A stretch of DNA of 64,000 bases, from contig NW_026782433.1 of assembly GCF_031769215.1 (NCBI RefSeq), positions 310,001-374,000 of the forward strand, read 5' to 3'. The notes beneath the pieces were generated by a model that searched no databases, was not told the DNA's origin, and saw nothing but the letters and a program-made list of their open reading frames with translations. Position 1 is the stretch's first letter; every line of letters begins with the position of its first letter. A program made the position numbers and the translations under genes. The DNA is from Ylistrum balloti. Taxonomy: Eukaryota. Shown piece by piece: positions 8,787-61,772 of this stretch.

Positions 8787-9686
8787 ATGGCTAATGGTAG
8801 ATGTTGTCCCAGGTATCTGTGCTGTATCTCCGGTGTAACAAGGTTACTATTTACCAATGGTAGATGTTGTCCCATGTATCTGTGCTGTATCTCCGGTGTA
8901 GCAAGGTTACTATTTACCACTGGTAGATGTTGTCCCATGTATCTGTGCTGTATCTCCTGTGTAACAAGGTTACTATTTACCAATGGTAGATGTTGTCCCA
9001 TGTATCTGTGCTGTATCTCCTGTGTAACAAGGTTACTATTTACCAATGGTAGATGTTGTCCCAGGTATATGTGCTGTATCTCCGGTGTAACAAGGTTACT
9101 ATTTACCAATGGTAGATGTAGTCCCATTTATCTGTGCTGTATCTCCTGTGTAACAAGGTTACTATTTACCAATGGTAGATGTAGTCCCATTTATCTGTGC
9201 TGTATCTCCTGTGTAACAAGGTTACTATTTACCAATGGTAGATGTAGTCCCATGTATCTGTGCTGTATCTCCTGTGTAACAAGGTTACTATTTACCAATG
9301 GTAGATGTTGTCCCAGGTATCTGTGCTGTATCTCCGGTGTAGCAAGGTTACAATTTACCAATGGTAGATGTTGTCCCATTTATCTGTGCTGTATCTCCGG
9401 TGTAACAAGGTTACTATTTACCAATGGTAGATGTTGTCCCATGTATTTGTGCTGTATCTCCTGTGTAACAAGGTTACTATTTACCAATGGTAGATGTAGT
9501 CCCATTTATCTGTGCTGTATCTCCGGTGTAGCAAGGTTACAATTTACCAATGGTAGATGTTGTCCCATGTATCTGTGCTGTATCTCCGGTGTAGAAAGGT
9601 CCCTATTTACCAATGGTAGATGTAGTCCCATTTATCTGTGCTGTATCTCCGGTGTAGAAAGGTCCCTATTTACCAATGGTAGATGA
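8787..9686. repeat. 60-bp minisatellite, ~15 copies
   Basis: Unit ggttactatttaccaatggtagatgttgtcccatgtatctgtgctgtatctccggtgtaacaa with point variants. Confidence 0.95.
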
Positions 9687-43752: not shown

Positions 43753-44368
43753 NNNNNNNNNNNNNNNNNNNNNNNNNNNNNNNNNNNNNNNNNNNNNNNN
43801 NNNNNNNNNNNNNNNNNNNNNNNNNNNNNNNNNNNNNNNNNNNNNNNNNNNNNNNNNNNNNNNNNNNNNNNNNNNNNNNNNNNNNNNNNNNNNNNNNNNN
43901 NNNNNNNNNNNNNNNNNNNNNNNNNNNNNNNNNNNNNNNNNNNNNNNNNNNNNNNNNNNNNNNNNNNNNNNNNNNNNNNNNNNNNNNNNNNNNNNNNNNN
44001 NNNNNNNNNNNNNNNNNNNNNNNNNNNNNNNNNNNNNNNNNNNNNNNNNNNNNNNNNNNNNNNNNNNNNNNNNNNNNNNNNNNNNNNNNNNNNNNNNNNN
44101 NNNNNNNNNNNNNNNNNNNNNNNNNNNNNNNNNNNNNNNNNNNNNNNNNNNNNNNNNNNNNNNNNNNNNNNNNNNNNNNNNNNNNNNNNNNNNNNNNNNN
44201 NNNNNNNNNNNNNNNNNNNNNNNNNNNNNNNNNNNNNNNNNNNNNNNNNNNNNNNNNNNNNNNNNNNNNNNNNNNNNNNNNNNNNNNNNNNNNNNNNNNN
44301 NNNNNNNNNNNNNNNNNNNNNNNNNNNNNNNNNNNNNNNNNNNNNNNNNNNNNNNNNNNNNNNNNNNN
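43753..44368. other. Assembly gap (616 N)
   Basis: Run of N. Confidence 1.
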
Positions 44369-44704: not shown

Positions 44705-46720
44705 TCACTTACCTTTTCCTTTGCTTCCTCCTATTCCGCTTCTCATTCCACCTCCTATCACACGAATTCCGCCGATGCCACCGAATCCACTGCCCATTCC
44801 TCCGTAATTGCCTCCCCATCCACTTCCCATTCCACCGTAATTGCCTCTCCACATACCGCCCATTCCGCCGTAATTGCCTCCCCATCCTCTGCCCATTCCA
44901 CCGTAATTGCCTCCCCATCCACTTCCCATTCCGCCGAAGTTGCCTCTCCACATACCGCCCATTCCACCGTTATTGCCTCCCCATCCACCATATCCGCTTC
45001 CCATGCCGCCGTATCCACCATATCCACCGCCCATGCCGCCGTATCCACCATATCCACCGCCCATGCCGCCGTATCCACCATATCCACCGCCCATGCCGCC
45101 GTATCCACCATATCTGCCCATTCCGCCGTAATTGCCTCCCCATCCACCATATCTGCCCATTCCGCCGTAATTGCCTCCCCATCCACCATATCTACCCATT
45201 CCGCCGTAATTGCCTCCCCATCCACCATATCTACCCATTCCGCCGTAATTGCCTCCCCATCCACCATATCTACCCATTCCGCCGTAATTGCCTCCCCATC
45301 CACCATATCCACTGCCTATTCCATCCATATCATATCCTCTCGGTCCGTAATCATCCCAGCCTCCATGGCCTCCTCCCTTGCCGCCTTTAACAAAATAAAA
45401 GGACGTGATAACAGAATTGTTTTCACAATCTTTAATCAATTTCAAAATCGATGAAACAAAGAAAATCGTTCAGGATAGTTTACATCATCGTGTACACGTA
45501 GACAATATGGGGAAAATATATTAGTACAAATTATATCTACTGTAAAGACAAGACAATGTAAATTCAGATCTATCTAAGTAATGTAACGTTTCCAAAAAGC
45601 GAACAGGGTAAATAGCAAAGTAAGTGCTAGGCATATTAATGCGCGTCAGAAATATGTAACTTGATATTGTACATCACAATGGCGATCCGGTATTAAATAC
45701 TAGTCTCTCTCGATGGTTTTTTTAAAATAATGGTATCGTAGACGCTTGTATTGTCATTGTTAATTCTTGATCAATATTGTCGTAGATATTCGCATTGTCA
45801 CATGTTAGTTTTAGTTAATGATGTCGTTAATTCCAGTAAAGAATAATTCCAGTACCAGTATTTAAATTTCGTTGATAATTGCCTGGTGTGGAGTTGATAA
45901 TACTTTTTTTCTATGTTAATGTTAAAGAAAATTTGAATAATACAACCGGTAATAATCAACGTATCTATATGTAAAAAAGCAATATTATCTGAATTTGTGG
46001 AATTCTACATTTAACATATTCCTTATACAATATTTTTGTGTGGCTGAAATGCTAAATTACCACCAACGATACGATCACTGAAACTGTATTTTTGTTGTCG
46101 TTTACGGTGATATTTCATGCTGTGTGTGACAAATATATTAAGAACAATGAACAGAGGTTTTTTTTAGTACAAAACAAAATATGGAATAAAATCGCGAAAA
46201 TAAGTTTGACGATTTTCTAGAATTTTTTCGCGAATAAGTTAGTTGTCTGAAGCAACATTTGCAGTTATGTTTTTTTCACGTTACTAGTCATATGCCATTC
46301 ATATAGATATGAAAACGCTTGAGATTTTAATTTATATGTCCTAAAATATCCGTGTTAAAGCGCCTATACAACGAAATCAATGATGTGGTTATTTACTTTT
46401 AAGTAATTCAGTTCGACCCCGATTCCCATGTAAATATCATTTACGAAAGATTTTCAGCTACTACAGAGAAAAATGGCTCTGAGATTTCTTTTCTTTAAAT
46501 GATCCCAGCTACAGTGTTTAAATGAAAAGATAGATATGTTTTACTAACAGGACTCAGTTTTAAAGTGAGATATATTTTCACTTAAGCCTATGCTATATGT
46601 AAAGCCTGCCATTTATATCTATTAACATATCTCCTATGATGATGCAAGATATAGCATACCAGCGTTTACAATAGCGACCAGGAGAATTGTGGCAACTGAT
46701 GCATGTAGAAAGGCATTCAT
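44705..46720 (-). CDS. Secreted glycine-rich repeat structural protein (shell-matrix or hinge-ligament type)
   Basis: Signal-peptide exon 46720-46660 (MNAFLHASVATILLVAIVNA, phase-1 donor GTATGC) joins exon 45384-44713 of repeats YGGWGGNYGGMGR, YGGYGGMGGG and WRGNYGGMG. The ORF stops at 44705, but AAAG|GTAAGT at 44713/44712 is a strong donor, so a last exon may lie in or past the N gap. Confidence 0.85.
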
Positions 46721-47032: not shown

Positions 47033-47316
47033 CCCGTATTCTGATTTTTTTTATACCCGTATAAACATAAACTTATCTATGTTTATCACTGTTACACGTC
47101 ATTTAAAAGTATACACATACTACAACCAGATGATAATAACATACCGATATATATATCTATTGTCTATGGTTTCTTTTTATCCAAGACAAAAATCCTTTTG
47201 AATACGTTTTATTTATCTAATGGTTATATGAAAATGGTAAAAAAAATTGAACAGAAATTGATTTTCTCAAAGATGTTAATTGTACGTTAAAGAAACTAAA
47301 ATCACCCCTTACTTAC

Positions 47317-47400
47317 CTTGGTTCCAGGTGACAGGAGAACACTGGACAACCTGATCTTGGCCGGAGTGGTGATCGGGAAGACCAGACTGGACATTTTATA
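47317..47400 (-). promoter_or_regulatory. TATA box and non-coding first exon of the Gly-rich gene
   Basis: TATAAAA at 47400-47394 on the minus strand, a pyrimidine-rich Inr-like stretch about 25-30 nt downstream, and a CAAG|GTAAGT donor at 47317/47316. Confidence 0.55.
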
Positions 47401-48354
47401 CAGGAGCGCGGAGTTTTGACATCTTTTTTTTGAGTTTGTCAAAGGTGAGGAACATACCTATGATCAAAGCGGCATTGTTTACATACTAAGAAAGAAAGAA
47501 ACACCGAGTTCAACATCGACTTAACACAGAATGACCCTGTAATATCGTGTTTATTGTCAAATCACTGCTACAAAGACAACAACAATCAGGTCTTGTTTTT
47601 GTTTGATTTTTAACATTAATAAATGAATATGATGTTAACAGGCCACCGGATGTGACACATTGATAGCTGACCCCAGTGTCAAAGAGAAATGATAAACTGA
47701 ATGATATTTTTTGATAAATAATATAGTGATAATATAATAATTCAAACTGAAAACATGCTTGTTCTTAGAATTAAATACACTCTCAGCTAATACAGCGTAA
47801 AATATCAAATTATTGGTAAAGTTGATCTTTTAAGTATAGAATGAGATATAGTAGAATCAAACAGTGATATAAATTATATCATACAGCTGCTTCGTCATTC
47901 GAAGATGGTCGGGACCAAAACGTTTTATTCGACTGTACAAGGTAACATTGTGATCTCTACATAAGCTGAATGGAAAGGTAGATTTAGAAGCAATTACATT
48001 TTACTATAAACGACTAAATATTGAGTGTTATTTTCTGTGTCTGTGTTGTATATCACTCTTACTTTCAATATCACATTTCACAAATATGACTTTATATAAC
48101 ATGCTTTTGGCTCTGAAATGTAAACTGATTATCTTCTTTCAAGAAGCTTGTAAAGGAAAAAAGGCAAGGTTATAAGCTGAACAACAAGTATTCTTTTAGT
48201 TCAAATTATTGGGGAGTTTGTTGCTTGGTATGTACTCTGTATAGACTTAGAATAAAGATGTGAGGTTTTTTGTTGTTAAAGTTTAAAGTGGTGGGGAGGG
48301 GGGGCGGTTTAATTAATCTTATTTGCACGTGTTTTGGGTTTTTTTTGTAGAAAA

Positions 48355-48407
48355 CGTTCCTCTCGAAATTTTGTTCTTCTTAATACGGCAGAATTTCGAG
48401 AGGAACG
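48355..48407. repeat. Perfect 16-bp inverted repeat with 21-nt spacer
   Basis: cgttcctctcgaaatt (48355-48370) and aatttcgagaggaacg (48392-48407). Confidence 0.9.
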
Positions 48408-48730
48408 CTCTCTAAAAAAAAAAAAAAAAACATGCAAACAAGATTAACTGACCTTTGGTAAAATAGAAATAAAGGAATTAACCGAATCACTTGTTTATGA
48501 TAACGTGATAGATTACAACGCTCAAACCAACACACAATACCCAGTGTATCCTTTGCACGTATAACATCAACTATCTCAAAGTTTGTAAATATTTTGTTTA
48601 CTGTTTTAAACATCTGTTACCTTGTTATTAAGGAAGTAAACGACACCATGGTGGTTGTAAGTAGAGATAGAGTTACTATTAAACCCCCTTTCCGCCTTTT
48701 TTTTGTATTACTGTAGACGGATGTACATTT

Positions 48731-48761
48731 GAAATCGAAAGTGAAAGTACCGGGAATTCCC
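48731..48761 (+). promoter_or_regulatory. ISRE/IRF-E-like element adjacent to an NF-kB site, upstream of the STAND gene
   Basis: GAAATCGAAAGTGAAAGT (48731-48748, three GAAA cores at 6-nt spacing) and palindromic GGGAATTCCC (48752-48761). A YY1-like CGCCATTTT follows near 48802, then a donor AAAGG|GTAAGT at 48873 that could splice to AAAG|CGACGATG at 49863. Confidence 0.65.
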
Positions 48762-49868
48762 GTAATTCAGAACAGCCTGGATATTTTCATCAGGGTACGT
48801 TACGCCATTTTGAATACGGACGGCCACTAAACATGTTAAGTTTTATAAGAAGAGGAACTGAGAGATAGAAAGGGTAAGTTAAATCTGGAACCGTAAATGC
48901 TATCATTATTAGATAAGCACCATTTTTCTCGAAATCAAGGCAGATACGTATACTTTAATATAATAGATAGGGTCCAAAGGTTAGGGTTAGCCACTTATAA
49001 CTTAAATTGACAACCGCTGTTGGCCAAACGATTAAATAACACTCCTTCTTTGTGTAATCTAGACCATACTATCACGTCGGATAAGATTAAGACTCTTCAA
49101 GCATTGCAAAAAAGTGTTGACCTTTTCATAGCAGGCTTCGATTTAGTTTGTCATAGACGATGAAGTAATTTGGCCTGAATAAGTGTAATAACATTATGTT
49201 TGTTGTCTTTATGCATCCATGACGACGTGATGTTTTTATCCAAGAGATAAGAAATAGTTTGTAAACTCTTCTAAGTGTATGCTTTATAAACACGTTAATA
49301 TATTTGAACCGCAGTTTTGTCTTTGACTTTGAGTTTCAAATTTTATAATATTATTACTCAGTTTATGAAAAAAGCTCCTAATATGTGTGTGGAAACTTGT
49401 AGAAACCATGCTATACCTAGAACCCAAAGGTAGTGCTAATTGCATGATAGTGTAGAAGAGAAAGGGATGACGAAACTCACTTAATAATATTATGTTCCGT
49501 TTAATCAAAATTGAGAATATCTAATATTAAGACGTATATTTACTGCCGCCCCTCTATACAAGTTAACTAAATTATCTGCTAGTAAAAATGTAAAACCTTG
49601 AGAAACTTATGAAAATAATTGAGTATGCCTCGTCGAAAATGAATATCAATTCCGAATGTTTGTTATCACATTGTTGTATCGTACACTGTTATTGTGTCAA
49701 CAATTACTTTTATCAGTGTTGTTGATAATATATATACATTTGATTCAGTATGTGTCTTCCGCCATCTTGTAAACATGGATGTTATTATGTATATATTTTT
49801 TGTTGTATATTCTATATGCTATGCTACACTTGGAATAAACTGAGCTTGAACCCTGTTTTAAAGCGACG

Positions 49869-52800
49869 ATGGGTGTCGATTTGGCAGTGTACCGTGCACG
49901 GGTAGGCTTATTTGTGCCTCGACCAGTGAATGGTATATTAACAAACATTGGATACCTGTACAAAGCTATCGCCAGTGTCCGGGGAGCCTTGACATGTAAC
50001 AAGATGAACAGAGATGGGGCTGTTCCATTTATTGAACTACTGTTGATGGCACAAGGAATTGAACCTAACCCAGGACCACAAAAGAGAAATCAACAAGTAT
50101 GTTATTTTTAATCTTCTGTCACTTCTAGTTTATGTTTAAGAATTTTTTTTAAAACCAATCATCTGAATGTGTGATTGCCGAGGTCGGTGTAACTTTGATA
50201 AACTTGTGGGAATGCTCGTAAGAAAAACCATGTTGCATTACACAAGCCTTAACATCAAATAAAATGACATCGTAGTAACTTTGTCTACTGTTCTCAAACT
50301 CAAGTATTATATCAGTCATATGGTTTTGTTTTGATCTTTTTTTTCATTGTCGGATACAATGATCGTCACAAGTTCTTATATGTGTGTTACATATACTTAC
50401 AGTCGTCTACAGATGAACAGAGTGAAGACACAGGTGATACTAACATCAGGATGGGTAAATATGTTACATTTACAGTTATATTAGTTACAATTTCATAACA
50501 TACGATATATCACTCTATATTTCATTAATTATGAAATTACAAAAATTTTATATCACCATCTCATTAGCAGCCAGAGGTGGGGGAGGGGAGGTAGGGGGTA
50601 TGTCCCCTGGTACAAATACTAACGACATGGGAATATAGGAGATAATGTAAACAAATCGAGGTTTCCTCTAAATGAATATCAAAAACGACAAATATCGCAC
50701 TACTTTTATCAGATAGAGGCATAATTCATAGGAAGCAATGACTTACTTCGTGTAATTTGCCCTTATTCTGTTGGCATTCACATCGCTCATGAATGCCAAC
50801 TGAAATAGTATCAATGGTTAAATATCATTGATGAAATCGAATCGTTATAAAAGTATATAATTAACGGACAATGTTTCTAAAGGCAATAAAAATCAACTTT
50901 TAAGACTTCTGAAAGGGTAAAACAAATCTATAAAAAAATATCATACTAGCAAAATGGAGGAAAACAAATTATTCTCAGAGCTGAATACACGGCCTGGAAA
51001 TGACTACAGATGACAACCAGGAAACAATCGTTAACAATTCAGTAACATTGTATATAGAATTGCTATTCACTCGTCTTTTGTACAATCCTCTATCGGAATA
51101 AAACTTAATATCTATCAATATGACATTATTTTTATTATTGGATTTTGACAAAGGTCATTATTCATGAATTGCCTTTCACAAAAATGTCATTGTTCGTGAA
51201 TTGCCTTTTACACAAAGGTCCAAAGAAGGCCACGAATTTGTCAATTCATTTACAGAGACAAGCCTTTTATTTTTTGCCATCAGTTTTTCGATAATCAACT
51301 GACAAATTTAGCACAACATCATATTAATATTGTCTTTTTCAATGTTTTTTGGTTTTAAATATTATAAAAGTCGTATTATCGTGAAGGCTCATTGGCTCTA
51401 CTTTTCTCTAGTACAGTAGCTGCATAGTAAAAATTAAAACTGTGTTTGTTTAAAAGACCACTTTCTATCGTATTTATAATTTATCTTGAGTATTGGCATT
51501 TACAAGTGAAGACAAATGTAATTTAAAGACTGAAAGTTTTTTTTTCTGAAAACTTCATTTCAATTTTCACATTTATAATTATCAGGCTTTAACGTAAATC
51601 CAGAAAGTGTTGAGGGGATACGGCAGTTAATGGAGTCTCTACAGCCGATAGGCAATCCTAGTGACCAAGACAGTCCAAATAGTGAGGGTGCAGTTGCAGT
51701 AGCCATACCTGGCCAGTCTGGAGCTGTTGCCATGCCAACTAATGTGACTCCAGGTGATGCATCTAAAATACATAATTTATGTGATGGTATTCAATGTTAA
51801 TCAATAATATTGATAAATAATTTTTCGTATTTATTGTCCGAGTCAGTATTTTTAAAAGTAAAAGATAATGCCGAATTTCAGACAAAAAATTAACTATGAA
51901 GGGTTCTGATTAGCCTCCATTCTGATTAACTGTTATGTATGAAATCGATTATGTCAGTATTGAATTTAATTATAGACGCGTCTTATAGAATTTAACTGGA
52001 ACTACATCTAATCTACAATACCTTTTCAGAGTACATTTTTTTTCTACCCAAATATCGTTTTACGTTTCATATCCATTGTATATGTGTATAAGTACTATGT
52101 AGTTACTCTACCAGACATTCAGTAAGGCATTCTATTACTGATATTTGCTTTTATCTATTTCAATAGGACAATTCTATTTATGAATTAAAACATATATTAT
52201 ATGTCTGTCATTAATATGCCTCTAAGCGGGGAAAACAGTTTTATGATTCAGTTCCAAAGTGTATTACAGGGCATTGGTTAATGTGATCTTGGTTCCGTTT
52301 TTATAGATAGTATCCATATATATATATTTATATCGTAATATCATAGACATGATCGTTCAAATACACAACACCAAAGTAGTAAACAATAAAATAGGAGAAA
52401 TTATATTCCCTGCTTGACTAATTGAAAAATAACACCCACCACCTTATCCCGGGCTTTTTATTTCTAGAATATAAAAAATGATAATGAAATTGAACATTTC
52501 ACTTTTGTTCAGATAGATAAGAAAAGGTAAGGGGTCACCTGCCCGACCACATGGGTTTTCCACAGGTATTCCTGTTTCCTCCCACAATAAGACCCCTTGT
52601 GCGCTATATATATCAGATAGATATGTCTGATTCTAATTTCAAACAAAGGGATAAGCAAGTATAAGTATCTATCTGAGCTGTTTTACGAAAAAAAAATCTT
52701 GGGGCAAGTAGCCAGTTCCTAGTCTTCCACATATCCTTTGAAACTAATAATATAATTGAATTCCTAGTCAATGAGCATGTGAACTACATACGTACATGGA

Positions 52801-55800
52801 GTGTAATGAAATTTTGTTTCATTGTACTACTCAACCAACTTCATTGAAATGGTATTTTAACTGGAATGGACTGTAGAATGTATATGATCAAAGGGAAACA
52901 ACTCATTTAATCTTTGGAACCAAGAGCTCATGTTTAAACACCGTATGTAGAAGACACTTTCTCACAATATTTATCACGTCCATTACATGTCCAAACTATA
53001 ATAAAAAGTCCTCTTCCCCAGATAGGGGTAGGCATTTAGAAGAAATATCTAACAAAATTTTCCAAAAACCTAACTTGTATTGAAAATATCATTATTCACC
53101 TAAACCAATCAGAATCATTTATACATATCCATTTGGGTTAAGAAACGTCCAAGAGTGAAAATATCACTGAGAGATTTTCCAGGTTGATCTTTATATGAAA
53201 AAAGCTCATAATATCAGTACTGATTAAAATTCAGGAGAAACTCAAAATGAGACAGTTAAACAGAACAGTCAGGGCAATTGAGAGTATGTGAGTACTTAAA
53301 CAGAACAGTCAGGGCTATTGAGAGTGTGCGAGTACTGAAACAGAACAGTCAGGGCAATTGAGAGTGTGCGAGTACTTAAACAGAACAGGCAGGGCAATTG
53401 AGAGTGTGCGAGTACTTAAACAGAACAGGCAGGGCAATTGAGAGTGTGCGAGTACTGAAACAGAACAGTCAGGGCTATTGAGAGTATGTGAGTACTTAAA
53501 CAGAACAGGCAGGGCAATTGAGAGTATGTGAGTACTTAAACAGAATAGTCAGGGCTATTGAGAGTATGTGAGTACTTAAACAGAACAGTCAGGGCAATTG
53601 AGAGTATGTGAGTACTTAAACAGAATAGGCAGGGCAATTGAGAGTATGTGAGTACTTAAACAGAATAGTCAGGGCTATTGAGAGTATGTGAGTACTTAAA
53701 CAGAACAGTCAGGGCAATTGAGAGTATGTGAGTACTTAAACAGAACAGGCAGGGCAATTGAGAGTATGTGAGTCCTTAAACAGAACAGGCAGGGCTATTG
53801 AGAGTATGTGAGTCCTTAAACAGAACAGGCAGGGCAATTGAGAGTATGTGAGTACTTAAACAGAACAGGCAGGGCAATTGAGAGTATGTGAGTAGTTAAA
53901 CAGAACAGGCAGGGCAATTGAGAGTATGTGAGTACTTAAACAGAACAGTCAGGGCTATTGAGAGTATGTGAGTACTTAAACAGAACAGTCAGGGCTATTG
54001 AGAGTATAGAGTATGTGAGTACTGAAACAGAACAGTCAGGGCTATTGAGAGTATGTGAGTACTTAAACAGAACAGTCAGGGCAATTGAGAGTATGTTAGT
54101 ACTTAAACAGAACAGTCAGGGCTATTGAGAGTATGCGAGTACTTAAACAGAACAGTCAGGGCAATTGAGAGTATGTGAGTACTTAAACAGAACAGTCAGG
54201 GCTATTGAGAGTATGTGAGTACTTAAACAGAACAGTCAGGGCTATTGAGAGTATGTGAGTACTTAAACAGAACAGTCAGGGCTATTGAGAGTATGTGAGT
54301 ACTTAAACAGAACAGGCAGGGCAATTGAGAGTATGTGAGTACTTAAACAGAATAGGCAGGGCTATTGAGAGTATGTGAGTACTTAAACAGAATAGGCAGG
54401 GCTATTGAGAGTATGTGAGTACTTAAACAGAATAGGCAGGGCTATTGAGAGTATGTGAGTACTTAAACAGAACAGGCAGGGCAATTGAGAGTATGTGAGT
54501 ACTTAAACAGAACAGTCAGGGCTATTGAGAGTATGTGAGTACTTAAACAGAACAGGCAGGGCAATTGAGAGTATGTGAGTACTTAAACAGAACAGTCAGG
54601 GCTATTGAGAGTATGTGAGTACTTAAACAGAACAGTCAGGGCTATTGAGAGTATGTGAGTACTTAAACAGAACAGTCAGGGCTATTGAGAGTATGTGAGT
54701 ACTTAAACAGAACAGTCAGGGCTATTGAGAGTATGTGAGTACTTAAACAGAACAGTCAGGGCTATTGAGAGTATGTGAGTACTTAAACAGAACAGTCAGG
54801 GCTATTGAGAGTATGTTAGTACTTAAACAGAACAGTCAAGGATATTGAGAGTGTGCGAGTACTTAAACAGAACAGTCAGGGCTATTGAGAGTATGTGAGT
54901 ACTTAAACAGAACAGTCAGGGCTATTGAGAGTATGTGAGTACTTAAACAGAACAGTCAGGGCTATTGAGAGTATGTGAGTACTTAAACAGAACAGTCAGG
55001 GCTATTGAGAGTATGTGAGTACTTAAACAGAACAGTCAGGGCTATTGAGAGTATGTGAGTACTTAAACAGAACAGTCAGGGCTATTGAGAGTATGTTAGT
55101 ACTTAAACAGAACAGTCAAGGATATTGAGAGTGTGCGAGTACTTAAACAGAACAGTCAGGGCTATTGAGAGTATGTGAGTACTTAAACAGAACAGTCAGG
55201 GCTATTGAGAGTATGTGAGTACTTAAACAGAACAGTCAGGGCTATTGAGAGTATGTGAGTACTTAAACAGAACAGTCAGGGCTATTGAGAGTATGTGAGT
55301 ACTTAAACAGAACAGTCAGGGCTATTGAGAGTATGTGAGTACTTAAACAGAACAGTCAGGGCTATTGAGAGTATGTGAGTACTTAAACAGAACAGTCAGG
55401 GCTATTGAGAGTATGTTAGTACTTAAACAGAACAGTCAAGGATATTGAGAGTGTGCGAGTACTTAAACAGAACAGTCAGGGCTATTGAGAGTATGTGAGT
55501 ACTTAAACAGAACAGTCAGGGCAATTGAGAGTATGTGAGTACTTAAACAGAACAGTCAGGACTATTGAGAGTATGTGAGTACTTAAACAGAACAGTCAAG
55601 GATATTGAGAGTGTGCGAGTACTTAAACAGAACAGGCAGGGCAATTGAGAGTGTGCGAGTACTTAAACAGAACAGGCAGGGCAATTGAGAGTATGTGAGT
55701 ACTTAAACAGAACAGGCAGGGCTATTGAGAGTATAAAGTATGTGAGTACTGAAACAGAACAGTCAGGGCAATTGAGAGTGTGCGAGTACTTAAACAGAAT

Positions 55801-58800
55801 AGTCAGGGCAATTGAGAGTGTGTGATTACTTAAACAGAACAGGCAGAGCAATCGAGAGTATGTGAGTACTTAAACAGAACAGTCAGGGCAATTGAGAGTA
55901 TAGAGTATGTGAGTACTTAAACAGAACAGATAGACTATGATAGCGCTGATTGCAGTTTCTGCTGTTTGTGTAGGAATCATTGTTGTATTTGAATGTTATA
56001 ATGTGTGGGTGTATATATATATATATATATATAGATGTAACTCAAAGATGCTTTGTGTATCGATGAAATATTTGAAAAGAATAAAATCAACATGACAAAT
56101 CTTTTCCGTTAACAATTTCAGGCCTAACGGTCATCTTCAGGCGATACGATAGCGGAATACGTTTGTCGCGCTGATTTTATTCTTTTCAAACATTTCATCG
56201 ATACATGATATTACGATAACAGGATACACAAATAAGCAAATCTTGATTATTTCCTATGTAATGTTTCAGTGGCTGTCTTCCAATATGTTGACAATCGAAA
56301 CTATAAAGAAGAAATTAATGTTGAAAATATGAAAGTGAAACGCGCTGAGAATGTAAATACTGGAGAACAGACTGTAATCCATGCCGGTGTGTAGATACTC
56401 ATATCATATTGTAATATATATATAGTTATATTATTATAATAATATTATTACAGCGAACCTGTTACAGCTGTCCAATGTTAAATGTATTCAATAATGCTTC
56501 ATAATAACACTTTTACAGCCTAGATCTTTGAATATCAATTAATGCATAATACCTAGAAATTAGTGTTATATGTACCATTATACATTAATGGAGTAATAAT
56601 ATATAAGTATGAATATACTATCACTAAAATTACTACAAGCGGTTCGTCTTTCACTTACAATAAAAGTTTAACTGATGAATTGGTGGTGCTTACAGAAAAA
56701 TATTAAATTTTTACATGTCGTAACTAAGATTTTGATGTTTTTTCAGGACCAGCAAATGGAAGTGAAGTTCATTCCACTCCGAAATTGAAAAAGAAAAGTC
56801 CCAAAAGAATTTTGCTTGAAGGTAATATCAACAAATGAAACAAAATGTATCGTGTATCATGATGGTAGTTATGTCGTATATATAACACCATATCACAAGC
56901 GTGTATCATGATGGTAGTTATGTCGTATATATAACACCATATCACAAGCGTGTATCATGATGGTAGTTATGTCGTATATATAACACCATATCACAAGCGT
57001 GTATCATGATGGTAGTTATGTCGTATATATAACACCATATCACAAGCGTGTATCATGATGGTAGTTATGTCGTATATATAACACCATATCACAAGCGTGT
57101 ATCATGATGGTAGTTATGTCGTATATATAACACCATATCACAAGCGTGTATCATGATGGTAGTTATGTCGTATATATAACACCATATCACAAGCGTGTAT
57201 CATGATGGTAGTTATGTCGTATATATAACACCATATCACAAGCGTGTATCATGATGGTAGTTATGTCGTATATATAACACCATATCACAAGCGTGTATCA
57301 TGATGGTAGTTATGTCGTATATATAACACCATATCACAAGCGTGTATCATGATGGTAGTTATGTCGTATATATAAACCCATATCACAAGCGTGTATCATG
57401 ATGGTAGTTATGTCGTATATATAACACCATATCACAAGTGTGTATCATGTTGGTAGTTATGTCGTATATATAACACCATATCACAAGTGTGTATCATGAT
57501 GGTAGTTATGTCGTATATAAAACACCATATCACAAGCGTGTATCATGATGGTAGTTATGTCGTATATATAACACCATATCACAAGCGTGTATCATGATGG
57601 TAGTTATGTCGTATATATAACACCATATCACAAGCGTGTATCATGATGGTAGTTATGTCGTATATATAACCCCATATCACAAGCGTGTATCATGATGGTA
57701 GTTATGTCGTATATATAACACCATATCACAAGCGTGTATCATGGTAGTTATATAAATAATCCAGGGGTTACATGCCTTTTTCCTTTTATTAATTGTAAGG
57801 AGTTAAATGTTCTACATCATGTTATTGTTCAACATCTCAATAACAAAAACTCTCAATTCCTAGTGCATATATTCAACTCTGGTATCAATTTTCTGTGTTA
57901 GTAAATAAGAGGTTTGTTTTCCTCCAGATAATGCCGAAACAATGTTAAAACGACACATCGAAGAAACAGCCAATATACTGGTCACGAGGACAGCAGCGGA
58001 AAAAGCAGTTGTCGAACGTATAAAGGATTACCATATGGTTGTCATATCTGGAGTAACGGGAGAAGGGAAGACAACTCTGGGTAGAGAAATATGTAAGAAG
58101 TTAAGAGACGGCAACCTTGACGAATCTATCAATTGTAAAACACCCGTACTTATCACAGTTCCACAGGACTGGAGTGACGTCGTCAATGACAAAGATGATA
58201 TCGTAGTATTTGTAGATGACATATTTGGGAAAACCAACTACCAGACAGGGCTTTTGAATGGATGGTCACCATTTTTTGATAGAATATTACAATGTTTACA
58301 CAAGGGTAATGTTTGTTTGGTAATGACTTCTCGCACGCATATACTTAAAGATGCCAGGCGAGAATCAGGTGTATTGAGCGAAATGATAAGTGACCATATT
58401 CTCTCTGAAAAGAAAACCGTAGATTTGACTGTCGACCACAAATTAACATATAACGAACGTTTAGATATCTACAATAAGCATTCTAATCAACGACAGGCTG
58501 GCGGGCACGTTATGTCTACCATGCTCCTTACATATCATGAAATTCGTCGCTTTCCGTCAAATATTTCTATAGGTTTTGCTCAAATTTGTAATCTCTTCTT
58601 TACCAATGACACATTTTTTGAGAAAGGGGAAAAGTTTTTCAGAAATCCTCTCCGAATGCTCACGGAGGAGATAGAGAGAATGAGACTCACTGAACCTCAC
58701 AAGTACTTTGCGCTAGTATATTGTTTCCTTAATGACCAAACCCTAGATAGCAGAAAGCTAAATCGTCTAAAAATGGAAAAAGATGATTATGAGAATTTGA

Positions 58801-61772
58801 AGGTATTAGCAGAGGTTTGTGGCGTCATACATACTGGAAATGTATTGGCAATGCTCAAAGACGGACTGAATGCACTAGATAGAACATATCTAACCAGACA
58901 AAATACAGTGTTCACTTTTGGTCACCAATCAATTGCAGACAGCGTTAGTCTTGTCTTCGGAAAAGAAAACCCAGAATTGATTTTGGAAAAGTGTAGCAAC
59001 CGTGTGATATTGGAACAGCTTGATGTTTCGGGAGCTGAAAAACCTGATATGTGTACATTGCACGTGCCTCCCGATAGCTTCCATCATCTTGTAAAACGAA
59101 TGTGCAAGATGATTTTGGAAGACAATGATTACAATCGAATAACATTAAAATCATTCCCAAGGTTCCGTAATCAAAAGTTTGCGGATTGTCTTTTTGAGTA
59201 CATCACCACCACACACGACGTCGCAAAAGGCTTCCTCAGGGCTAATTCTACTTTATTAGACTCTTGTGAAAACAATGTCTTCTTTCTGCGATCATATTTT
59301 AAGTTCAAAGTTGATGAGCTCACTGTCAAAGAGAACGGTATTTTAGCCTTCACAAGAGCGTTACAAAGAACTCTGATGTCATCTCTGGAACATAAAAACA
59401 CAGAATCAATGTCGATTCTGCTGAGCAATGGAGCATTTTGCACTACAAAATGTCTTCAATTAGCAATTAGTTCAAACGATGTCAATTTGGTAGAGTTTGT
59501 GTTGTCAAAGAATACCTGGACAAAGTCTGAAGTCAATGAGACTATCAGCGACAACACTCCAGGTGACTTGTGTGATACTCTTGAGAGGACGGCAAGTATG
59601 TGCAAAGTACAATTGTTATGGAGTCAATATAAACAACAAAAAACATACATGATAGAGAAAATAAAAAATCTCTCCAATTGGAGTCCTAAAGACATGGCAA
59701 AATCTGCAGAGAAAATGGACTTTGACTCATTACATGCTATATTTCAGACTTGTGAATTGCAGGAGCATTACTATCATCTGTTTGAAATAATATTGAACTC
59801 AAAACATAAGAGATTAAGTGACGCTATTGCAGTTAAAAGGATATTGGGACACATGGACGGGGGAATAGTGAAACGTGCTTTACAAAGTTGTAATTTGGAC
59901 ATATTTCGTTTTTTACTTTTCTCGTCAAATGTAGATACAGCGCAACTAAACTCGATGGTGTCCGAAGCCATACATCTTAACAAAACAGACCATCTAGAAG
60001 TTCTAATCAAAGCAGGTGGGCAACCGTCTCATGATGCCTTTGTGAGAAAGGCAGGAACGAATTTCGTGGGAGTTGAGGATGTTGTTGGAACGATAATGGA
60101 AACGGTGTCTTGGACACAAACACAGCTTAATGATGCACTAGACGAAGCCATTAAGTCAGGTTCATATGCGTCCATAAAAATCCTTTTTGAAGGTGGAGCA
60201 CGGTTTATGGCAGATGCATTGGTAAATGTATCCAAACGACAGTATGATCCACTGATAATAAGTGAAGAAGAAATGACTTTTGAAGAAGAGCTCCAACTCC
60301 TTATTGAAATGTTAAATGGAAATAAAAAAGAAGAAGAAGAAAATGTTCCTGTTACAGTTTCATTTGTTTTCTCGAAACATAAATGGGTACCAAGACAGAT
60401 TACTGAAGCACTTAATGTTGCAGTGGAATGGGGACCACTTGGAACAGTGAAGTTTCTGGAGAACAATGGAGGAACTTTCCAAAGCGGTGCACTGTTAGCT
60501 GCAGTAAGAAGGACACGTGATACACTCAAAACTGTTAAGTTTGTGAGAAAGTCAGAGAAATGGTCAGTAGACCAACTAAGCGATGCCTTACACGAGTCTT
60601 TAGTCCTTTGTAGGTCTGATGTTGCTCTGTACTTATTTACTATGGGAGGACAGTTCAATGATTCGAGTTTATTGAATGTTCTTGGATGGCATGTTGAACA
60701 TCATGTTCAGATAAGGCTCTTGAAGATCATTCTTCTATCTCGTACATGGTCACCTGATTTGCTTGCTGAAGCCATTCAATTTGCATGTGAAACAAATGGC
60801 CCTTCAATCTACGCAATTTTGGGTGTTCCGGAAATATCAGGAATACTTGACAAAGATATTCTATTAAACCTACCAGAGGTTCAAGAGTTAAAGAAAACAA
60901 AAATACAGTTTTTGAAATGTGAAGGTATGACAGATGAGCTTACAATAGTCTTGAATAAGGAAATAAAAGAAGGTTGCATAGATATCGTTGAACACCTCAC
61001 TCGCGAGATGAATATTCCATGCGACAATGACAGCTTATCAAATGCTATGGATAACACTCGGAACTACCAGAGCTACAACAGACTGAAAATGGTCAGCCTA
61101 GTGCAGGAATCAAGAGACTGGTCGGATGACTTGCTGATGAAGGCGTTGGACAAAGCTGTGAAACTTGGGTATACTGATGTGATATTCTACTTACATGATC
61201 ACGGAGCCATGTTCAGTGACCAAAGTCTAGAGTACGCCATTGTTGATAAAAATATGGCGTATGATACGTACGGTTTAGTGATTTATATGATGAAGTCCCG
61301 TCAGTACAATAAACAGCAGATGGACAATGCCTTACAGAAGTCTTTAGAAGTTGGACATTTTCAGCTCGTATCCATGTTTCATGAAAGAGGAGCAGAATTT
61401 ACAGGCAAAAGCCTACAGAACGCTATTCATAAAATGTGGAAAACAACCGAAAGGCTTCCAGCAGTACAGTTTGTATTGAGGGCAAGGGAGTGGGATGCAA
61501 TTGAGAAGAACGACGCCCTGTTGAGCGCTGTAAGATTAGGTGATGTAAGAGTTATTGGTTGTCTTCTCAGATGTGGAGGAGAAGTTTCCAACCGATGTTT
61601 GTCAGAAATTCTACATAAGAAATGTAAACCATCTCACCGCCTGTCTATCATCAGACTCCTTCTCTCTGGTTCCACTTCTCTGTCACAGGAACTACTTAGA
61701 AATGCGTTGGAAAAGGCTAGAAAACTGTCGGAACCTAAAGTCGAAGAATACATCCAACAGCTTGTGTGTTAG
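49869..61772 (+). CDS. NLR-like STAND NTPase (nSTAND3-type) with N-terminal 2A-like and RHIM-like motifs and C-terminal ankyrin-like repeats, ~1494 aa, 6 coding exons
   Basis: Exons 49869-50096 (phase 0), 50403-50454, 51586-51753, 56270-56386, 56747-56821 and 57928-61772 (all later junctions phase 1) splice into one open frame of 4485 nt. Walker A GVTGEGKT (58050-58073), Walker B IVVFVDDIFG (58200-58229), sensor CLVMTSR, then helical domains and ankyrin-like repeats. Confidence 0.85.
52530..52600 (+). mobile_element. SINE central-domain fragment (opposite orientation to 19925-20020)
   Basis: gggttttccacaggtattcctgtttcctcccacaataagacccc resembles the SINE core ttttctccgggtactccggtttcctcccac. 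Confidence 0.45.
53255..55928. repeat. 40-bp minisatellite, ~66 copies, intron 3 of the STAND gene
   Basis: Unit acttaaacagaacagtcagggctattgagagtatgtgagt, seen directly as a 40-nt period. Confidence 0.97.
56056..56205. repeat. Fold-back element (MITE-like) with 44-bp inverted arms
   Basis: tgtatcgatgaaatatttgaaaagaataaaatcaacatgacaaa (56056-56099) pairs with 56162-56205 with four mismatches. Confidence 0.85.
56850..57745. repeat. 49-bp minisatellite, ~18 nearly identical copies, intron 5 of the STAND gene
   Basis: Unit cgtgtatcatgatggtagttatgtcgtatatataacaccatatcacaag. Confidence 0.97.
57928..61772 (+). CDS. Terminal 3.8-kb exon of the STAND gene: NTPase domain plus ankyrin-like repeat array
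   Basis: 1276-aa ORF in the track. The acceptor TTTTCCTCCAG at 57927 is in frame with it. The VVFVDDIFG Walker B and hhhTSR sensor are typical of the nSTAND3 family seen in bivalve proteins (recalled, not searched). Confidence 0.93.

Follow-up and report, generated by a model that had tools for sequence, protein, structure and literature searches.

We analysed a window of 64,000 nucleotides from Ylistrum balloti (the whole stretch from position 310,001 to 374,000 of contig NW_026782433.1; coordinates below count from its first letter), in which the region from 48731 to 61772 is one intact gene, LOC132557850, a member of a small Pectinidae family of nSTAND3 STAND NTPases. Six exons on the forward strand (49869-61772, joined in silico), all with AG/GT borders, splice in phase into 4,485 nucleotides with one terminal stop and encode a protein of 1,494 residues. 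The gene, its architecture and an interferon-stimulated response element (ISRE) in front of it are well supported, while an immune role, inducibility and a translational brake in the leader are what we infer by reasoning. The features of the locus, with exon phases in brackets, are as follows:

48731 to 48748, forward strand: ISRE/positive regulatory domain I (PRDI)-like element GAAATCGAAAGTGAAAGT, with three GAAA cores at 6-nucleotide spacing and two overlapping GAAANNGAAAGT sites
48752 to 48761, no strand assigned: perfect palindromic kB-type site GGGAATTCCC, 3 nucleotides past the ISRE
48762 to 48874, forward strand: putative non-coding first exon, predicted from the sequence, with donor aaagg/gtaagt at 48874/48875
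49869 to 50096, forward strand: coding exon 1 (0-0), the 70-residue leader MGVDLAVYRARVG...FIELLLMAQGIEPNPG/P plus 6 residues, with the core GxExNPGP and with M46 inside
50403 to 50454, forward strand: coding exon 2 (0-1), acidic stretch (SSTDEQSEDTGDT...), identical to NCBI protein P0001
51586 to 51753, forward strand: coding exon 3 (1-1), low-complexity linker
56270 to 56386, forward strand: coding exon 4 (1-1), conserved 39-residue motif in which hydrophobic and polar residues alternate, with ...AENVNTGEQTVIHAG at its end
56747 to 56821, forward strand: coding exon 5 (1-1), basic patch PKLKKKSPKR
57928 to 61772, forward strand: coding exon 6 (1-0), including the stop, with the NTPase module, a helical/winged-helix region and the repeat array
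57987 to 58484, forward strand: nSTAND3 P-loop NTPase domain (Pfam PF20720), with Walker A GVTGEGKT and Walker B VVFVDD, then TSR
59520 to 61769, forward strand: ankyrin-like all-alpha solenoid of about 750 residues, the presumed sensor (AlphaFold2, Foldseek, Pfam)

From residue 46 onward the six-exon protein is exactly P0001 (LOC132557850 isoform X2 of Ylistrum balloti, 1,449 residues, NCBI), and the NCBI model therefore uses the same five junctions. Isoform X2 differs from our 1,494-residue model solely by starting at the internal methionine M46, and thus has 45 N-terminal residues fewer. An earlier note on this DNA, made from the letters alone, had proposed that six exons splice in phase into a protein of about 1494 residues of which the open-reading-frame track shows only the last exon. 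Both statements are borne out, the first by the single-stop join and the identity with P0001, the second by the open-reading-frame list of the window, where only the last of the six exons appears (57942-61772, 1,276 residues, 100% identical to P0001, 'uncharacterized protein LOC132557850 isoform X2 [Ylistrum balloti]'). The motifs quoted in that note were all found in the spliced protein, namely GIEPNPGP, the acidic stretch, NVNTGEQTVIHAG, PKLKKKSPKR, Walker A GVTGEGKT and Walker B VVFVDD. The single public sequencing run that contains the locus (X1) covers introns and exons evenly across 47300-53200 and thus represents DNA of another individual.

Most of intron 3 is occupied by a 40-bp satellite (53256-55901, about 66 copies, 94% match), which accounts for the strong GC skew at 54-56 kb, and intron 5 carries 18 copies of a 49-bp tandem repeat (56851-57743, 98% match). 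A further stretch of intron 3, 52521-52605, stands out in the DNA run, where its contig depths add up to about 7,500 as opposed to about 8 elsewhere and many loose ends occur, which points to a very high-copy short interspersed repeat.

The NTPase was assigned by Pfam to nSTAND3 (PF20720) with E=4e-27 and 95.2 bits (cut-off 27.2) over 150 of the 155 profile positions, and in an nSTAND3 scan of the species' own genome the NTPase of this gene scored 100 bits. The Walker A motif GVTGEGKTT and the Walker B motif VVFVDD are invariant in 11 relatives. The NACHT profile reached 16.9 bits, below its cut-off of 26.7, and matched the P-loop portion only. The profile search thus placed the NTPase inside the STAND class, as an nSTAND3 and not a NACHT domain, in agreement with what had been proposed from the letters; by its profile matches, the protein is NLR-like in layout and lies outside the strict NACHT/NB-ARC NLRs. 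A sequence search of the PDB with the NTPase region gave no significant match to any solved structure. The nSTAND3 genes are expanded in the Ylistrum balloti genome, where at least 21 matches were scored and 108 candidates counted, and expansion of this kind is typical of immune gene families.

AlphaFold2 modelled the C-terminal 750 residues as paired helices throughout, with a mean predicted local distance difference test score (pLDDT) of 80.8. The best PDB matches of this region by Foldseek were the AnkB 24-repeat domain (E=1.2e-6), ankyrin-1, DARPins and the latrotoxin ankyrin domain, at a probability of 1.0 with low template-modelling scores of 0.25-0.3. In Pfam, Ank_2 reached 36.7 bits against a cut-off of 27.3, with no single stretch passing alone, and Ank_3 reached 22.2 bits against 22.3. 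Since the repeats are divergent we use the label 'ankyrin-like', which the weak Ank_2 match and the structural matches justify, and the ankyrin-like array read from the sequence earlier is upheld by the solenoid model together with these matches. The AlphaFold2 model of the N-terminal part, covering residues 140-765 (P0001:95-720), shows with confidence helices with short hairpins after the NTPase, and the linker and conserved motif without secondary structure at pLDDT 25-45. Pfam searches at E<=10 with six N-terminal regions of the family found no Death, TIR or CARD domain.

Full-length relatives comprise a Ylistrum tandem paralog and proteins of Pecten, Mizuhopecten and Argopecten, with a deeper branch, P0010/P0011, at 36% identity. 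The survey of bivalve paralogs that the earlier note had suggested showed the same architecture in scallop relatives: the order of leader, linker, motif, basic patch, nSTAND3 and repeats is kept in P0002-P0011, and all parts are conserved across four scallop genera. At the position of PKLKKKSPKR the relatives have longer K/R-rich patches resembling a nuclear localization signal (NLS). The tandem paralog, LOC132557854, starts about 5 kb past the stop of the gene (from G000:C576:376641-376673 onward) and has an ISRE of its own, a longer K/R-rich NLS-like linker insert and a motif exon that lacks the first half. A third family gene of the Ylistrum balloti genome sits on contig C770.

Upstream of the gene, the triple-GAAA pattern of the ISRE occurs twice in the 64-kb window versus an expected 0.03, the other copy being coding. 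An acceptor lies immediately before the ATG, which is in a strong Kozak context, and the succession of the element, about 110 nucleotides, GTAAGT at 48875 and this acceptor suggests a short non-coding first exon. The Pecten maximus ortholog has the same layout, with an identical ISRE of 18-19 nucleotides at -748, followed by GGGAATTCGT and by a GTAAGT donor about 130 nucleotides on. The tandem paralog has retained CGAAAGTGAAAGTAC, at a distance of 2.48 kb upstream of the ATG, and in the one pair for which the flanks of the ISRE were aligned, the window gene and this paralog, they proved unalignable; the C770 gene has GAAAATGAAAGTA then GAAATTTCC at -2222. A sense-strand ISRE thus stands upstream of 4 of 4 scallop family genes examined, and the a-priori consensus GAAANNGAAAST has a site within 6 kb upstream in 5 of 7 leader-bearing genes, in both cases at a chance of about 0.04-0.05 for each gene.

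The kB position reads GGGAATTCGT in Pecten, which matches the consensus GGGRNWYYCC at 8 of 10 positions, and GAAATTCC in the tandem paralog and GAAATTTCC in the C770 gene, where it is half-site-like, GAAATT(T)CC. Among leader-bearing genes outside the scallops, the Mactra HEPN-NACHT gene has two ISREs, with a perfect GGGAATTCCC and a TATAAAA near an ISRE. Of the ISRE+kB promoter claimed in the earlier note, the ISRE is present and is kept in paralogs and ortholog, whereas the kB site, perfect here, is partial in the relatives; the ISRE appears from these comparisons as a conserved footprint and the kB site as only partly kept elsewhere. A composite ISRE-kB pattern has four matches genome-wide, two of them at family promoters, and since it was drawn from those two promoters it shows rarity only. 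Among the variants listed for the individual of run X1 (11 further differences exist beyond these), none falls inside 48731-48761 and two lie just outside, at 48721 and 48782.

The IRF site beside a kB site recalls the human IFN-beta enhancer, where, at the PRDI-PRDII junction, the IRF site GTGAAAGT is immediately adjacent to the kB site GGGAA(A)TTCC, although the scallop element fronts a mollusc receptor-like gene and its kB half is only partly conserved. Control of the gene by interferon regulatory factors (IRFs) is plausible, since ISRE reporters are switched on by oyster IRFs, which themselves respond to poly(I:C) (PMC5557890).

Two side observations concern the promoter. The other two composite sites of the genome, C141:1061038-1061069 on the reverse strand and C409:154298-154327 on the forward strand, consist of an ISRE-like GAAANNGAAAGTA then GGAAATTCC and have no informative gene downstream, a 913-residue open reading frame without a Pfam family lying about 8 kb past the C141 site. 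Between the ISRE/kB pair and the first donor, Ylistrum has TTACGCCA (48800-48815) and Pecten has TTACGTCA at a similar place (L022:9320-9335). We take the Pecten sequence to be a cAMP response element (CRE)/ATF-type site, and the two could represent a third conserved promoter element.

The leader encoded by exon 1 has leucines at -13 to -11 before its GxExNPGP core. The canonical core GD(V/I)ExNPGP is absent, the sequence being QGIEPNPGP with G for D, and this holds for 19 of 19 aligned leaders; the 2A-like leader reported earlier is therefore real, GIEPNPGP being present, and of a non-canonical kind. Leaders of 60-70 residues follow the consensus MGVD..YR.RIG.F...G(I/V)ExNPGP, with M1, G2, D4, G13, LL and G.E.NPGP invariant in the alignment. 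Measured against the paralog and Pecten, the ratio of nonsynonymous to synonymous change in the leader exon is 0.21-0.26, by which the exon is under purifying selection. N-myristoylation of the invariant MG start is conceivable, but S/T/A is not kept at position 6 throughout the family.

Sequence and profile searches of the 648-Mb genome found three copies of the leader, all at nSTAND3 family genes, and an origin as part of a transposon was rejected on this ground. Among 1.84 billion proteins a leader profile gave 96 matches, many of them full-length and N-terminal, on proteins as different as PARP14-type RRM/NID arrays, URGCP/GVIN-like 'interferon-induced very large GTPase' proteins, another nSTAND3 protein, a HEPN_DZIP3+NACHT protein and an Ig-domain-like protein, the last judged by eye from its sequence and not by profile. 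The genera concerned are Ruditapes, Mercenaria, Mya, Mactra, Tegillarca and Argopecten. Exon borders were checked in 6 genes, and in all of them the leader has an exon to itself that ends 1-6 codons past NPGP. On these alignments and gene structures, the leader is a bivalve-wide N-terminal exon module common to several antiviral-type families. A keyword search of the literature found no paper describing a bivalve 2A-like leader, a search by the LOC identifiers found no paper, and the shared leader exon behind ISRE-type promoters across antiviral-type families is apparently undescribed. In one Ruditapes philippinarum URGCP-like protein, P0050 (L036:8001-16501), 85 residues precede the MGID leader; because every other leader starts its protein, this upstream part of the gene model may be an annotation artefact.

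Experimental data on leaders of this kind come from a 2026 preprint in which about 3,300 20-mers were screened in HEK293T cells (Snell & Matreyek, 10.64898/2026.06.17.732966). The exact 20-mer of the Pecten ortholog, AVTFIDLLLRIQGIEPNPGP, is classed there as 'Nonskipping Only, Reduced Protein Levels' and a sister peptide as 'Falloff Only' (Table S6), and the Mercenaria GVIN-like leader as falloff_reduced (Table S7), the classes having been assigned by a classifier with 86% correct calls on its own training samples. In the authors' proposal, eukaryotic 2A-likes serve as expression regulators that lower protein abundance. With the Pecten 20-mer non-skipping at reduced protein levels and a near relative showing fall-off only, the idea that the receptor's N-terminus is set by ribosome skipping is weakened even though the 2A-like core itself stands, and we consider it more likely that the leader acts as a translational brake or gate than that it makes a clean N-terminal cut.

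If the leader were instead an efficient native 2A, skipping would free a conserved 69-residue peptide, itself functional in targeting, in regulation or as a second product, and Pro70 would be the first residue of the receptor. Such activity would suit the preprint's treatment of GxExNPGP as a recognised functional class and the enrichment of leucine at -13 to -11 that it reports for active eukaryotic peptides, positions at which this leader also has leucines, as well as the recoding activity of the N-terminal 2A-likes of sea-urchin NLRs (PMC4981915). Moreover, leader residues 1-50 are conserved well past the 20-30 residues that a 2A needs, which argues for a leader-peptide function and, more generally, suggests that the leader may do more than stall the ribosome. 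The non-skipping and fall-off classes of the relatives' 20-mers speak against efficient skipping, as does the G-to-D change, which in the screen made one related peptide a skipper but not the Pecten one. We therefore regard an efficient 2A as possible but unlikely.

The explanation of the whole that we favour, and consider fairly probable, is that of an intact nSTAND3 family gene, driven by IRFs, whose product is a leader-braked STAND switch that signals through its linker. The gene would be transcribed by IRF-type factors after infection, in this copy probably together with Rel/NF-kB. Its non-canonical 2A core (GxExNPGP behind an LLL helix) would act as a brake or gate, by way of stalling, fall-off and weak or no restart, and would thereby keep the level of a dangerous receptor low. 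The ankyrin-like solenoid would hold the STAND switch off until a ligand binds, upon which the NTP-dependent oligomerisation that we propose for the switch would cluster the N-terminal linker. Once clustered, the linker, which carries the conserved motif and the basic patch but no folded effector domain, would recruit a downstream factor.

Several observations weigh against this explanation. The transcription start, the non-coding first exon and the inducibility are deduced from the DNA, the kB site is perfect only in the Ylistrum balloti window copy among the scallop family genes compared, and 2 of the 7 leader genes have no ISRE in the upstream DNA available. The NTPase core is poorly modelled by AlphaFold2, the first half of residues 140-765 having a pLDDT below 50, and these residues have no Foldseek match at E<=0.001, with Avs5, NLRP7, Avs4 and SAMD9 appearing at E 0.08-0.2. 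Among the entries listed from the tables of the preprint, the window's own 20-mer was not found, the assay data being those of relatives' 20-mers; these were assayed as 20-mers in human cells, and the native 70-residue context and bivalve ribosomes may differ.

How the linker would signal depends on the exon-4 motif, which the earlier note had read as RHIM-like and as an amyloid effector end. It is conserved in 7 family members as ...VENMKVK.AENV.TGEQT(I/V)(I/V)H., and its only other copy in the genome is that of the tandem paralog. In the deeper branch the motif is more RHIM-like (..ANVIGDHNAITI.. in P0010 and ..NQVIGDNNKITI.. in the C770 gene). The RHIM is defined by an (I/V)Q(I/V)G tetrad, which is needed for M45/RIPK1 assembly (bioRxiv 10.1101/324590). 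A regular-expression search of the window protein and 9 relatives for the core tetrad (I/V)-Q-(I/V/L/C)-G had no match, Pfam gave no RHIM, HET-s or sigma match at E<=10 on the six N-terminal regions, and PDB searches with the motif returned no RIPK, ZBP1 or M45 chain. Profile, protein and back-translated pattern searches of the 648-Mb genome found no second gene with either version of the motif, and a matching amyloid partner is absent at this sensitivity. One extra match to a back-translated pattern, on contig C190, was dismissed as chance, its frame being full of stops. AlphaFold2 gave the motif a pLDDT of 25-30 and no secondary structure, which is uninformative either way on amyloid.

What remains of the RHIM assignment is therefore a loose resemblance, and we consider it improbable that the motif is a RHIM-like amyloid effector that, on activation, templates amyloid with a partner as in fungal and bacterial NLRs. 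Such a role would account for a motif that is conserved under selection, occupies a symmetric (1-1) exon by itself on the N-terminal side of the NTPase, the place of NLR amyloid motifs, shows alternating hydrophobic and polar residues with a G-x-Q element, and has closer look-alikes in the deeper branch (GGEANVIGDHNAITII in P0010 and GGENQVIGDNNKITIN in the third genome gene). Amyloid signalling pairs, however, need a matching partner, and besides the missing tetrad, Pfam and PDB matches, the window version has E and T at the I/V positions of the RHIM. The motif shares with the RHIMs of RIPK1, RIPK3, ZBP1 and M45 and with NLR amyloid motifs the character of a short conserved alternating stretch with G, Q and N before a STAND NTPase, but differs in having no core tetrad, profile match or same-motif partner. 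It is tempting to speculate, at a similarly low probability, that the motif is a diverged RHIM-type relative (closest ..NQVIGDNNKITIN..), that the receptors signal by amyloid-like templating and that the leader exon marks a translation-gated, IRF-driven antiviral regulon; if this were true, the scallop nSTAND3 proteins would be metazoan STAND receptors and would connect the amyloid signalling of fungal and bacterial NLRs with the RHIM signalling of animals.

Very improbable, finally, is a non-immune STAND/ankyrin NTPase, for example a nuclear or nucleic-acid-linked one acting through its basic patch, with the ISRE-like element bound by a non-immune factor, because although K/R-rich NLS-like patches are conserved before the NTPase and no death, TIR or CARD effector domain is recognised, the nSTAND3 relatives of known function are defence proteins, the leader is common to GVIN-like, PARP14-like and NACHT families, an ISRE with or without kB site recurs at leader-gene promoters and the nSTAND3 family is expanded in the genome.

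The favoured reading, an IRF-driven and leader-braked STAND switch, can be compared with three known systems. The NLRs of the sea urchin Strongylocentrotus purpuratus have active N-terminal 2A-like sequences that serve at the same time as signal sequences (Roulston et al. 2016, PMC4981915). In both cases a large STAND-type receptor family has reading frames that open with ...NPGP at the extreme N-terminus and not between proteins. The earlier note knew of no description of this exact combination; the 2A-led NLR-like kind, however, has been known since 2016 from these proteins (PMC4981915). The sea-urchin leaders are 26 residues long, with a canonical D(V/I)ExNPGP core, and mostly predicted signal peptides (PMC4981915), whereas the scallop leader belongs to a type of 60-70 residues with an MGVD..YR.RIG.F head and G for D; and the sea-urchin proteins are DEATH-NACHT-LRR, whereas the scallop protein combines nSTAND3 with ankyrin-like repeats and has no folded effector domain.

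The only functionally studied nSTAND3 proteins documented are the bacterial Avs5 anti-phage systems (AVAST type 5, SIR2-nSTAND3-TPR), which share with the scallop protein the PF20720 NTPase, the tripartite STAND layout and a C-terminal alpha-repeat sensor, and whose structures are among its weak fold matches. The effector domain of Avs5 is a SIR2 and its repeats are TPR/Sel1/PPR, in contrast to the low-confidence, apparently unstructured N-terminal linker, ankyrin-like repeats, introns and 2A-like leader of the scallop protein. As for the GxExNPGP 2A-likes of the 2026 preprint, the Pecten ortholog 20-mer and the Mercenaria GVIN-like leader are themselves entries of the screen, and the preprint notes 2A-likes on ankyrin-like and death-domain proteins; it takes the 20-mers singly, and the leader family, its own-exon structure, its spread over several bivalve antiviral-type families and the ISRE promoters are not described in it.

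Elsewhere in the window, an open reading frame at 44705-45445 on the reverse strand encodes Gly/Tyr/Trp/Met-rich repeats (GGWGGNYGGMGRY units, in tandem repeats of 39-99 bp) without a Pfam family and adjoins an assembly gap (43753-44368); it could be an exon of a glycine-rich structural protein. A second, at 8787-9686 on the forward strand (299 residues), encodes a run of 23-residue Cys-rich units (..NGRCCP.YLCCISGV.RLLFT..) with marginal Pfam matches only, and is less likely to be a gene than a 69-bp tandem repeat whose frame stays open.

Herpesvirus and Vibrio cause mass die-offs in bivalves, animals devoid of adaptive immunity, and to our knowledge no function has been assigned to the majority of their expanded receptor-like genes. 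The locus offers a concrete testable unit among these, with a conserved IRF-type promoter element, a translational leader, a STAND switch and a very large ankyrin-like sensor. In clams, ark shells and scallops, the same leader exon of 60-70 residues, with its G(I/V)ExNPGP core, stands on several antiviral-type families that are unrelated to one another. Should its role be that of a translational brake or gate, the leader would constitute a shared second layer of control over an invertebrate interferon-like response, and would provide a natural case for learning the role of non-canonical 2A sequences in cellular genes.

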